Position numbers and translations under genes: made by a program. DNA of 64,000 bases from Octopus sinensis (Eukaryota). How positions within the stretch are numbered: position 1 is the first letter of the stretch; each line of letters begins with the position of its first letter. The stretch spans positions 63,500,464 through 63,564,463 of the forward strand of contig NC_043011.1 of NCBI RefSeq assembly GCF_006345805.1, read 5' to 3'. Below are positions 10,630 through 17,538 of this stretch, one piece after another. A model generated the notes under the pieces. The model saw nothing but the letters and a program-made list of their open reading frames with translations, made no database searches and was not told the origin of the DNA.

Positions 10630-13600
10630 TCACTGAATAAACTAACGTAAGTGTCATTTACAATGAATTAATAAGAAACAAAGTAAATTAAAATAATTAC
10701 CACTGGTCTGCATTGAGAAAGAAACATTTCTCGGAACATGTCAGCACACACACGTTCATGCTTGTCGTATAGGCAAAAATAATAATAGATCCAACGTCTG
10801 TATGATAAAGACAAAAGGGTTTTCATTTTGGATAAACAGTAATTTTTTATTAACATCATTATCAAGAAATGGTAGAATCTTACTTCTCGTACTAAGAGAG
10901 CCAACCAAATATACGGTTCTAAATTCGGTGTTTGGCAGTGCTTACTAGTTCTTGGACATAAGGCATATACTGATTTACATTAAATCGAATTGTCTTGTAA
11001 CGGAAAAATCTTCTGTTTCCGTGCAAGTATTTAACGCTTGGTTTAACGCATAGAGACTTCTACACTTTGTATAATTGTCAGAGCAATTTTACTGAATGCA
11101 AAGCTGTTGATTTTAAAAAGGGAGACAACATATGGTACATTAGATAAAGTATTTTACAATAACAACTAAGACCGTGATCTAATAGTAATTAATGATAACT
11201 ATACTTATCCACCCGTCAGGTTTGGTATTTAAACAATTTCGAATGTTCAAAGCCATTACAATATTCTGTCGTCCGATGATGAGAAGGATTTTCCAACGGA
11301 TGGAACATATAGATTTACGAACGGTACAGTTAAATTGTTTCACTTATTTATCTGTCAGCATGCTAGGACAACGCCTTGTAAATGAAGGAATTGAATTCTG
11401 AAAGCCAAACAGAAACGATCGCTTATATTCGCTAGCTGAGTAGATTGGAGCAACGTGAAAATAAAAGATCTTGCTCAAGGACACCACTCTTAGTCTATGG
11501 CATTTTAAACTTTAAGATTAGGAGCCGAGTACACTAACCATTAAACCAAGGTCCTTTCAGTGTACAAGTCATTTCGTAAGTAAGCATTCCCAATAAGAAT
11601 CCGATCAAAGTAAAAATACAACCTCAATATAAGGATGATTTAATTGTCTGTCAGCACATTGTGATTTGTTCTGGTACCATATCAGTATCAGCCATATGGT
11701 GAGAATAAACGACATTTAAAATAGTTAATTTAAAAACTCGTTTTTTTAGTAGTAATTATAAACATTTGAATTTTGGTGCCGTGAAAACATCTTCGAAATA
11801 TTTGTATTCGACCCTATCAAAAGATTTTGATTGATCCAAATTGGTGAGTGTTCAATTTCTAGTAACGGGATCCTTTATAAGACCATAAAAGAATTTCTCA
11901 TCTGTCTGGCTGACAAAGTGAAATTGTCGACAAACTATACCATCCTTGTCCGCCAGCTTACAGAAAACTCTTTCTACATAAGACCTAGACGATTCGGTGC
12001 AATTTTCCGAGTTCACGTAAGCACATTAGGGTTATCTACTAAGACACTTGAAAACGTCTGAGCAGCTTTTTGAGGTTATTCGACCCACCTCCTACCAGAT
12101 ATCCCTACAGAATAAAGTTATACACCGAAGACAGCGCTCTAATCTTCTACTAACATTTAAGTCCGAGACGTTCGCAGCAAAACCTCCAGAAGCTTGAAGT
12201 AATCAGACCGCCCTGCATCTGTCGGAGCATAGGCAGCCAGCATTCTGAAAGCACCACAGTCACTACTGTTTACATCTAGGACGAAGAACTTAACTTCTGG
12301 ATACAGGGACAATGCTGTCATTTTTAAAATCCAGACCTTCCCAGAAAAGCAATTGTGAACCGTTATTTCCCCTCCCGGCCGAGACGGAGATAGAAAAATC
12401 TCCTATCCACCAAAAAGGCTGATGAAGTCCCGTGCGTTGGATAGTCTGGATGGATAGGCTGCTACGTATACAGGAAAGGACTTCAGTTAATTCGAATATG
12501 ACTTTACTTCCAGCGCGACCTAATATTTATGCAACCTATTCTGCGCATTACCAAACTAAAATTAAATATTTCAGACGGAGAAGAGATCTACTTGCCGCTG
12601 TAGTCATGTAGGGTGGCTCATACTCTTGGTATTTTGTGAGGTCGTTTGTACAAGGTTTTTAGAAGTCTTTTTGAGAAGGTATTTTGGAGAGATTCAACAA
12701 TATGTGGGAAGTTTCATTCAAATGTTGTGTATGTGTTTTGGGTGGGTTTTACAATTTGTATTTGTGGTGTTGATGTTGTGTGGGAAGACTAAATCTGTGA
12801 ATGTGTTGTTTGTATTGTCACGTGGATATTATTAGGTGCATATCTTTTGTATGGATGACTTATGAACTTTGTATTATTTGTAGAATCTGTTTGCGTTGTG
12901 CATTGTGTTGGGGTTTAAGGTGGTCGGGCTGGTGGGTATGGTGTTTTTGTTGAAGTTGTTTGATGTGTGGTGATGCTGTTGTGAAGTCCCGCCTATCTGT
13001 GCCTCCGTCTTTTTCTTCTACTCTCTTCTTATTCTTTTCCTTTCTTTTTTGGGTGGTTGAGGGGACTGTCTGTCACCCACCCCTCTCTCGACATCAATAC
13101 TCAAACATTCCGAGCTGTTTGGATCCGAAGGGGTATTTTCTGTGTCTCCTTTTTTTTTGTTGGGGTTTATCTTTTAAAGCTGCTATTGGTGGTCGTGGTA
13201 CACCGGATGGTGTCTCTGTTATTGTAGTTGGCGTTGCCCTGGCAACGGTAGGAGGCAGCGGCGTTGTTACTGCTGTTACAGGTGATAGTATTGTTGTTTG
13301 CGTAGCCAGAGATTTCTGCTGCATTTGCTACAATTGTTCTTGCTGCTACTATATGGAGGTGCCCCCGGTTCTGGTGCCGGCAGAAGACCCCCTGTTGACC
13401 ATTACCATCACAAAAGTTTTTTTGTATCGTGTTCAGTTTCTATGTAACAAACCTCTTTACTCTTTACTTGTTTCCGTCATTTGACTGCGGCCATGCTGGA
13501 GCACCACCTTTAGTCGAGCAGGTCGACTCTAAGACTTATTCATTGTAAGCCTAGTACTTATTCTATCGGTCTCTTTTGCTGAAATGCTAAGTTACGGGGA

Positions 13601-13736
13601 CGTAAACATACCACCATCGGTTATCAAGCGATGTTGGCGGTACAAACATAGACACGCAAATATATCCACACATACACACATACATACATCTAGACACACA
13701 CACAGACACACAGACACACACACACACACACACACA

Positions 13737-16700: not shown

Positions 16701-17538
16701 CACGTCAAAAGAAAAACAGCGCTAAGGAAGAGGTGTCTGTCGGAGAGAATATTTCACGAAAGATGGAAATATGTAGCACGAGTGTTGCGAGTGGTTTTAA
16801 ACGTGCGAATATGCCATAATTTGTCTTGAAATGTGTCAGTCGGGACAGATGGATTTGGTGCTAAACCCAAGCGTCACTCAGTTTGTTGTGTCTATTGTGG
16901 TGTAATCATTCTTCATTACATATATTATATGTCAAAGTTTTAATAGCATTTTAAATTCATTCGTATATCTGACCCTCAGATTGTACTGTCCCCATAAATG
17001 TTGACCCCCCAGTGGGAAATAAAGAAATACTGATTGTGTTAGTGACTCTTGAATTAGCAGAAGTCGTCAATTTATTCTTACAGTATTCGGGATTCCTCTT
17101 TCTTTCGCAATTTCCAGTGGATGTTATCCTGGAGTCAGTTTACATTTAATAATTTAAGTATATTATTTTTTATCGCATCGCTATCTATAATCATATGTTC
17201 TTCATACGTTTTTTTCTGATTTTAGTTTTTTTTTATTTGAAAATATACGTATATTTTTATACCCTCGGGCTTTGGGTGCGGTATCTTAATATGCATTTAT
17301 ATTCTACGTTGTGAATGTATGCGTTAGATTTGAAGTTGTGTGACCAATTATGTTGATTAATTTTCAACCACAAATATATATAAATGTAAATTCATTTCTA
17401 TGTAATCATTTAATATGTGAGTGCATCTACTGTATTTACACAGCTGATAAAAATATTATGATAACAGAAAAATAAATTATTATTTCCATATTGCAACTTA
17501 CCTGCAAAGAAAAGAGACAGGAAGAAGAGTGTTTTCAT
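10630..17538 (-). CDS. Copy 1 of a spliced gene for a small secreted Cys-rich protein; proposed 103 aa: MKTLFFLSLFFAADAVDSECHRFAEGNCMDIRKANIPRPTYTLECLRFFRYKTIRFNVNQYMPYVQELYEKRWIYYYFCLYDKHERVCADMFREMFLSQCRPV
   Basis: join(complement): 17502-17538, 14012-14111, 10946-11012, 10884-10891, 10701-10797, stop TGA 10630-10632. All introns are GT-AG, phases are compatible (1,2,0,2,0), and each splice site is conserved in the paralog at 29.3-39.4 kb. Hydrophobic N-terminus and six mature Cys. Confidence 0.75.
10701..10797 (-). CDS. Copy 1 exon 5 (RWIYYYFCLYDKHERVCADMFREMFLSQCRPV)
   Basis: Acceptor tttatcatacag|, donor GTG|gtaatt, 97 nt versus 94 nt in the paralog (frame-preserving). Synonymous changes at C, L, D and P codons in this frame. 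Confidence 0.85.
10884..10891 (-). CDS. Copy 1 exon 4, 8-nt microexon TACGAGAA (Y E K-)
   Basis: ggctctcttag|TACGAGAA|gtaagatt; paralog has cactcgtag|TCGGAGAA|gtaaggtt. An in-frame TAG immediately upstream forces use of this acceptor. Confidence 0.6.
10946..11012 (-). CDS. Copy 1 exon 3 (RFFRYKTIRFNVNQYMPYVQEL)
   Basis: Donor CTA|gtaagc conserved in both copies. Acceptor aaacag| is conserved but pyrimidine-poor; an alternative acceptor aatcag| lies 43 nt downstream. Confidence 0.55.
11425..11556 (-). mobile_element. Degraded tRNA-derived SINE head and central domain (also at 30085-30220)
   Basis: gctagctgagtagattggagcaacgtgaaaataaaag.tcttgctcaaggacac resembles the reverse complement of the SINE central domain at 46480-46550. 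Same position in both duplicated units. Confidence 0.65.
11800..13420 (-). mobile_element. L1/Tx1-clade LINE remnant in intron 2 of copy 1
   Basis: Antisense of the RT motif NLDQSKxFDRV at ~11810-11845, APE fragments, ORF1 tail; paralogous to 30560-33300. Confidence 0.7.
13453..13943 (-). mobile_element. tRNA-derived SINE (Octopus-type), near full length with internal (CA)/(TA) tract
   Basis: Minus strand: box A TGGCTGAGTGG, box B GTTCAATCCC, body ttgggcaagtgtc..atagcctcgggctgaccaaagc, 3' tail ggtgctccagcatggccgcagtcaaatgacggaaacaagtaaa. Confidence 0.85.
14012..14111 (-). CDS. Copy 1 exon 2 (DAVDSECHRFAEGNCMDIRKANIPRPTYTLEC)
   Basis: Acceptor aaatattttag|, donor TT|gtacgt, exactly 100 nt as in the paralog (36660-36759), identical C-x7-C-x16-C spacing. 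Confidence 0.85.
14483..17030 (+). mobile_element. L1/Tx1-clade LINE, internally deleted, in intron 1 of copy 1
   Basis: APE start MAIRIGCVNVRGLMSSWNQGLFLNDIRSPDLDVILATET, C-terminal zf-RVT-like LAWECYRNVLPVRDKLARHGQCDTPTCPRCGQCRET, A-rich 3' end at ~17020; RT core absent. Confidence 0.8.
17502..17538 (-). CDS. Copy 1 exon 1, signal peptide (MKTLFFLSLFFA-G|)
   Basis: ATG..GCA G|gtaagttgc, phase-1 donor; paralog MKSLFFLCLLFA-G| at 39396-39432. Confidence 0.85.

Follow-up and report, generated by a model that had tools for sequence, protein, structure and literature searches.

A tandem array of three-exon genes probably encoding fast-evolving secreted six-cysteine peptides in Octopus sinensis

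The window analysed here is a stretch of 64,000 nucleotides of Octopus sinensis DNA (contig NC_043011.1, positions 63,500,464 to 63,564,463 of the forward strand), and the elements under study are two copies, A and B, of a gene predicted to encode a small secreted six-cysteine protein, together with their paralogs on the same chromosome. Coordinates are window positions unless a contig is named, and copies A and B both lie on the minus strand. Self-comparison of the window yielded two duplicated units, which align in three blocks: 9519-11631 with 28147-30294 (76% identity), 14103-14363 with 36751-37013 (82%), and 17041-17963 with 38908-39851 (74%). Gene A starts with exon 1 at 17502-17538 (37 nt), which holds the ATG and 12 codons of a putative signal peptide and ends in a phase-1 donor (CAG/GTAAGT). 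Exon 2 at 14012-14111 (100 nt; acceptor TTTTAG, donor GTACGT, phase 2) encodes the end of the signal peptide and the first half of the mature peptide, with the cysteine pattern C-x7-C-x16-C. The last coding exon at 10701-10797 (97 nt; acceptor ACAG, followed by GTAATT) encodes the second mature half, with the pattern C-x8-C-x11-C. The corresponding exons of gene B lie at 39396-39432 (37 nt, signal peptide), 36660-36759 (100 nt, C-x7-C-x16-C) and 29336-29429 (94 nt, C-x7-C-x11-C). The DNA alignment between the two copies ends at the edge of exon 2 (14103 in A, 36751 in B). When exon 2 is spliced directly to the last exon, the frame is kept in both copies, the products are 78 aa (A) and 77 aa (B) long, and the overall spacing is C-x7-C-x16-C-x8-C-x7/8-C-x11-C, with eight residues between the third and fourth cysteines. 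An earlier reading made from the letters of this stretch (the sequence-only reading) had described, in both duplicated units, a small secreted six-cysteine protein encoded by several exons, and this description is backed by the open frames, the invariant cysteines, the conserved splice sites and the conserved signal-peptide exon. It had also remarked that the list of open reading frames misses the gene; this is so except for the last coding exon, which lies inside a listed 78-aa frame at 10668-10904 and had been numbered exon 5.

Relatives of the two genes were searched for in the 2.72-Gb, repeat-rich assembly of the same genome (13,516 contigs), with the products of A and B and those of the paralogs as queries. 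Significant matches to the peptide were confined to contig C15, between 63.33 and 63.54 Mb, where at least nine paralogous genes (A to I) form a tandem array over about 200 kb in both orientations. Copy I lies on the minus strand immediately to the left of the window (C15:63494590-63499631) and is a complete gene built from the three shared exons. C and D are encoded on the plus strand and E, F, G and H on the minus strand. The recovered set comprises the full three exons of A, B, C, D and I, both cysteine exons of E, F and G, and the last exon alone of H. Where recovered, the exons are 37, 100 and 94 or 97 nt long, exon 2 being exactly 100 nt in eight of eight copies, and the only length variation among the cysteine exons is one single-codon indel. 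Splicing exon 2 straight to the last exon preserves the frame in each of the eight paralogs for which both were recovered (A, B, C, D, E, F, G and I), and the codon split by this junction encodes a hydrophobic residue (L, A, V or I) in every one of them. The splice sites of exons 1 and 2 are GT-AG wherever seen. The coding frame of both cysteine exons is free of stops in 8/8 paralogs, whereas the other two frames contain stops in seven to eight of the eight. In an alignment of seven paralogs, the six cysteines and one phenylalanine are the sole invariant columns; mean column identity is 58%, and the paralog peptides are 31-44% identical to that of copy A. The shared exon architecture, open frames and invariant cysteines of A, B and their paralogs are far above chance expectation.

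The confinement to one cluster also bears on the idea that the exons derive from a transposable element or another repeat-encoded protein, an origin that we regard as extremely unlikely. The region is indeed rich in transposable-element remnants (a long interspersed nuclear element (LINE) reverse transcriptase, a DDE transposase fragment, inserts resembling short interspersed nuclear elements (SINEs), and dispersed repeats), but the protein-level matches are limited to one cluster of about 200 kb on one chromosome, the intron block beside the last exon is specific to that cluster, and the product carries a putative signal peptide and a cysteine scaffold and matches no Pfam domain. A match to a transposable-element protein, named in the sequence-only reading as an observation that would speak against the gene, was looked for, and no transposable-element domain was found in the copies.

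Besides the three shared exons, the sequence-only reading had placed two further coding exons between exon 2 and the last exon, giving five coding exons, a product of 103 aa and a C-x33-C spacing in place of the x8 obtained by direct splicing. These two exons (75 nt in total) had been proposed without coordinates, and candidates were rebuilt by a brute-force search of GT-AG pairs. Segments of this kind, open in A and with their splice dinucleotides kept in B, do exist. However, open pairs of 8 and 67 nt alone number 56 in A and 143 in B and are thus common by chance; 12 pairs have their AG and GT conserved between A and B, and two of these give the x33 spacing without adding a cysteine. The first consists of 11012-10946 (67 nt, as exon 3) and 10891-10884 (8 nt, as exon 4) on the minus strand. 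It is open in A, but in B a TAA interrupts its frame, and paralogs C and I, though intact, lack 10971-10880; the segment 10946-11012 evolves like intron, being 88-97% identical to D. The second pair, 12244-12209 (36 nt) and 11009-10971 (39 nt) on the same strand, is open in both A and B, but its first piece lies in a dispersed repeat that does not occur in intron 2 of C, D or I, and its 39-nt piece has a 7-nt deletion that shifts the frame in C, and in D its GT is gone. The surroundings of both pairs change at the pace of intron, unlike the hypervariable exons. Because both pairs fail on the evidence of the family, the five-exon model, closed by its stop-only exon, was rejected; we consider it very unlikely, and exon 2 is probably followed directly by the last exon, with no coding exon in between. 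The three-exon model, not the 103-aa model, is the basis to be used for peptide synthesis, proteomic searches and annotation. The dispersed repeat itself (11900-12580) is old, with 825 first-look candidates and copies of about 70-73% identity on many chromosomes, and its open frames can mimic exons.

The 3' end of the genes allows two alternatives. Gene A (10630-10700, minus strand) either has a 68-nt intron (10700-10633) and an exon consisting of TGA alone (10632-10630), as the sequence-only reading had it, or is read through to a TAA at 10670-10668; the read-through adds the ten codons V-I-I-L-I-Y-F-V-S-Y and lengthens the precursor to up to 88 aa. Gene B (29265-29335, minus strand) likewise has either a 68-nt intron and a TGA at 29267-29265 or a read-through V-N-I-stop (29335-29324). 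In both copies the string ttattcag directly precedes TGA 68 nt downstream of the last coding exon, and a phase-0 GTAA follows the last exon in eight of nine paralogs (TT in G). The acceptor AG of the stop-only exon is found in A and B only; it reads CTG in E and F, and the motif is missing in C, D and I. A hydrophobic read-through tail (V-I-I/N-L-I-Y-F-V-S/C-A/Y) is present in A, C, E, F and I; elsewhere the frame ends after three codons (B), ends after five or six (G) or enters a TA repeat (D). In A and B, where AG adjoins TGA, the gene may close with a stop-only exon; this is not a feature of the whole family, and we consider it rather unlikely, a read-through into the short hydrophobic tail serving just as well as an ending. 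Over about 250 nt past the last exon, A and B are 85-100% identical, and the part of this at 10440-10629 (minus strand), 85-100% identical to B as against 60-80% further downstream, is probably a conserved 3' untranslated region of gene A. No canonical poly(A) signal was found within 10440-10629, and none is conserved across the paralogs.

Upstream, a TATA-like motif whose role is presumed lies about 260 nt before the ATG on the minus strand (17798-17804 in A, 39682-39688 in B), inside a stretch of over 400 nt that is conserved in five paralogs. A candidate 5' untranslated exon was ruled out: its donor, a GTAAGT some 220 nt before the ATG in A and B, is CTAAGT in C, D and I. Relics of the family were found as well. 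At 2977-3354 of the window (minus strand) lies a promoter-like fragment without exon 1, 69-75% identical to 17607-17996 of A and to B, which is probably the leftover of another family member. At C15:63455033 an orphan sequence resembling exon 1 (M-K-T-L-F-F-V-C-L-L-F-A) has its donor changed from GT to CT; neither exon 2 nor a last exon was detected nearby, and it is a decayed member of the family.

The duplication reaches beyond the gene, since 18049-19075, upstream of gene A, is 84-87% identical to 3641-4798, close to the window's left end. A tandem repeat of about 190-227 bp in two to three copies (14567-15212, 89-94% identity) lies in intron 1 of gene A, and in intron 1 of gene B a DDE_3 transposase fragment (37648-38280, minus strand). 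A LINE-type reverse transcriptase frame (RVT_1, E 2e-18) occupies 22684-24381 on the minus strand, and 6001-8000 is extremely AT-rich (13.7% GC) and apparently microsatellite. A tRNA-like SINE head was sought with ARAGORN, and none was found.

The divergence of exons, introns and flanks was compared among the paralogs. Pooled over 15 pairs, identity is 0.64 in exon 2 and 0.67 in the last exon, as against 0.81 in exon 1 and 0.75-0.84 in 150-nt flanks. Identity ranges over 55-71% for the mature-peptide exons and over 75-100% for their flanks. Exon 1 of gene A is 65-100% identical between paralogs, like its flanks; exon 2 is 55-68% identical to the other paralogs, compared with 68-85% for the 150 nt upstream; and in the last exon, identity to B and D falls to 50-60%, with flanks at 83-100%. 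Between A and D, identity is 88-100% across 11860-10860 and drops to 55-70% only inside the last exon. The block of the second intron at 10860-11850 (minus strand) is specific to the family and more conserved than the exons (88-93% identical to D, I, H and C; 73-75% to G and B), and it occurs in the cluster only, save for a SINE-like insert of about 130 nt near 11420-11555. Gene conversion or a regulatory role may account for the conservation of this 1-kb block.

In the youngest pair, C and I, the flanks are 94-99% identical and the mature-peptide exons only 83-84%. The exon differences amount to 32 in 192 nt, compared with about 22 in 749 nt of flank (Fisher p = 1e-10), and the codon changes comprise 25 nonsynonymous and 2 synonymous ones, the ratio of nonsynonymous to synonymous rates (dN/dS, omega) being 3.0. 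For E-F, E-G and F-G, omega is 1.4-2.3. A pairwise range of 0.7-1.7 was also recorded, with a family-wide value of 1.09, the invariant cysteines included, and a kappa of about 0.9. Two features expected of tandem secreted cysteine-rich peptides under diversifying selection are thus seen here: invariant cysteines within a hypervariable mature region behind a conserved leader, and dN/dS above 1 or exons that diverge faster than their non-coding flanks.

These figures were also set against the possibility that both units are dead, as pseudogenes or as non-coding segmental duplicates, and that their exons are chance open frames. An omega near 1 in the older pairs would suit such copies, as would the lack of an annotated protein in the databases and the fact that coding status is read from sequence. 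Eight copies that are 30-45% apart at the nucleotide level nevertheless keep their frames, their lengths, every cysteine and the splice sites of exons 1 and 2. Neutral decay cannot make exons outpace their flanks or give an omega of 3 in C-I, and the genuine relics found in this cluster do not look like these copies. Dead duplicates are therefore highly improbable.

The peptide product was characterised by prediction. In A, B, C, D and I, the amino terminus consists of M-K, a hydrophobic core of 9-10 residues and A-x-A, and the first 15-16 residues would serve as a signal peptide. With cleavage after A-x-A assumed, the mature peptides have 61-63 aa, 6.9-7.7 kDa, an isoelectric point of 6.9-9.2 and 7-10 aromatic residues. 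The six invariant cysteines presumably form three disulfides. There are no conserved dibasic sites in the seven-paralog alignment, and a pro-region is therefore not expected. AlphaFold2 models are all-helical, with one helix crossing the junction between exon 2 and the last exon; the mean predicted local distance difference test score (pLDDT) was 66.7 for the single-sequence model (about 78-80 over residues 41-70) and 56.0 for the two-sequence model.

Homologues were searched for at the levels of family, sequence and structure. No Pfam-A family was matched by A or B at E <= 10, and the seven paralogs gave just two unrelated chance matches (E 0.14-0.19); the Pfam families of insulin, CHH/ITP, saposin, OBP/CSP, defensins, ShK and Kazal were without a match. 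The best hit in a profile search of the PDB sequences had an E of 0.39, and Foldseek found no match to the PDB at E <= 0.001 for either model, which is a weak test of fold with models of low confidence. Neither the 78-aa protein nor the seven-paralog alignment retrieved anything in a word-indexed search of 5.8 billion proteins, and an exhaustive hidden Markov model (HMM) search of 1.84 billion representatives with a two-sequence profile gave no true relative, in a protein database that includes eukaryotic proteins and whose coverage of octopus proteomes is not established. The sole HMM match, a 636-aa repeat protein that hits a 15-residue stretch 14 times, was discarded as spurious. A search of the literature by theme and by peptide strings found no description of the family. 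The sequence-only reading had matched its spacing to none of the insulin-like, CHH/ITP, saposin, OBP and defensin frameworks, and the searches (Pfam, PDB, protein databases and literature) likewise gave no match to a known framework. We take the family to be real and lineage-restricted, and probably annotated nowhere so far.

Small size, secretion, helical structure and six cysteines, with a mass of about 7 kDa within the range of hormones, could point to an endogenous hormone or neuropeptide-like factor of the insulin or CHH/ITP type that acts on the animal's own receptors. The insulin/relaxin framework consists of a B-chain C-x11-C and an A-chain CC-x3-C-x8-C, with a C-peptide flanked by dibasic sites; the octopus family lacks both a CC pair and conserved dibasic sites. 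The CHH/MIH/ITP framework has six cysteines with a C-x2-C and C-x3-C core in a helical peptide of 72-78 aa; neither a C-x2-C nor a C-x3-C motif occurs in the family. Given these spacings, the lack of a Pfam hormone match and of conserved dibasic sites, and the fact that hormone genes are normally under purifying selection rather than present as nine hypervariable tandem copies with omega >= 1, a hormone is unlikely.

Taken together, A and B are probably members of a tandem array of three-exon genes for fast-evolving secreted six-cysteine peptides that act as outward-facing ligands. Several points weigh against this reading. Codons for the same amino acid differ in 22-30% of cases, compared with a per-site divergence of 7-10% in the family-specific intron block, so that synonymous divergence in the exons exceeds intron divergence and the contrast between exon and intron may stem partly from gene conversion of the introns and not from positive selection alone. 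Taken alone, an omega near 1 in the older pairs could also reflect relaxed constraint. An additional conserved exon, changing no faster than intron, is conceivable. The low AlphaFold confidence makes the helical fold and the disulfide pairing tentative, and expression, tissue, both true ends of the gene (5' and 3') and the point of signal-peptide cleavage are matters of inference. The difference between exons and introns is probably the outcome of diversifying selection mixed with gene conversion of introns or faster mutation of exons.

If the reading of A and B as secreted ligand genes is right, the peptide would be released from the cell and act outside it as a binding ligand, and selection would diversify variable helical surfaces on a fixed disulfide scaffold. 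Among the paralogs, the leader exon, the introns and the 3' flank are conserved, and the two mature-peptide exons change much faster, retaining just the cysteine scaffold and a few aromatic residues. Such a pattern is typical of proteins facing a foreign or co-evolving partner, as for salivary or venom toxins, mucosal defence peptides, and pheromone or gamete-recognition ligands. By analogy, the octopus peptides may function as toxins, defence peptides or pheromones. We put forward more tentatively, as a possibility that we would not quite call probable, an octopod-restricted, unannotated family of helical three-disulfide peptides of about 7 kDa with a new cysteine framework, encoded by at least nine tandem genes and shaped by conotoxin-style targeted diversification. 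In this reading the mature-peptide exons would hyperdiverge at synonymous and nonsynonymous sites alike, beside strongly conserved introns and untranslated regions, and the peptides would serve in venom, in defence of the mucosa or in chemical communication. Catalogues of the peptides of cephalopod venom, mucus and pheromones are poor, and genes with short exons are easily missed by annotation pipelines. The family, if correctly interpreted, would offer specific peptides with a new six-cysteine framework to consider as salivary toxins, as defence peptides or as recognition signals. It would also be a further natural case of exon-restricted hyperdivergence and a testbed for distinguishing gene conversion, targeted mutation and selection.

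Among known systems, conotoxins combine a conserved signal peptide with hypervariable, disulfide-rich mature peptides; the mature exon outpaces the introns, synonymous rates are raised, and transversions are many. The octopus family resembles them in its kappa of about 0.9, its synonymous excess and its multi-exon genes. It differs in that conotoxins are shorter, are mostly non-helical knots with other frameworks and have a long pro-region, and no homology to conotoxins was detected in Pfam or in the exhaustive HMM search. In the genes of snake-venom PLA2, introns and untranslated regions are more conserved among tandem paralogs than the coding exons are, which is the same exon-faster-than-intron pattern as in the octopus family; the fold and the taxon are unrelated, and the PLA2 scaffold is that of an enzyme, with about 120 aa. 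Aplysia attractin and the Er pheromones of Euplotes are, similarly, small secreted helical three-disulfide peptides that serve as external signals and diverge fast. Their cysteine spacings are shorter and different, no similarity to them was found by the PDB-sequence search or by Foldseek, and to our knowledge they do not occur as nine-gene tandem arrays.

The MgCRP-I peptides of Mytilus galloprovincialis carry a C(X3-6)C(X1-7)CC(X3-4)C(X3-5)C array in one exon, behind a pro-region ending in KR or RR (PMC4558851). The order C-C-CC-C-C lies there entirely in the last exon, whereas the octopus cysteines are divided three and three over two exons and include no CC. The dibasic site that goes with the MgCRP-I pro-region was not seen in the octopus family, and the sequences show no similarity. 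By cysteine array, distribution over exons and dibasic site, the octopus family does not belong to MgCRP-I. MgCRP-I is nevertheless its nearest analogue in the literature, although not a relative: both are lineage-restricted molluscan families of short secreted peptides with six invariant cysteines, a conserved leader and a hypervariable mature region; both have expanded by duplication, with positive selection and no assigned function; and both have genes built from a signal-peptide exon, a phase-1 intron, an exon of about 100 nt, a phase-2 intron and a last exon (PMC4558851).

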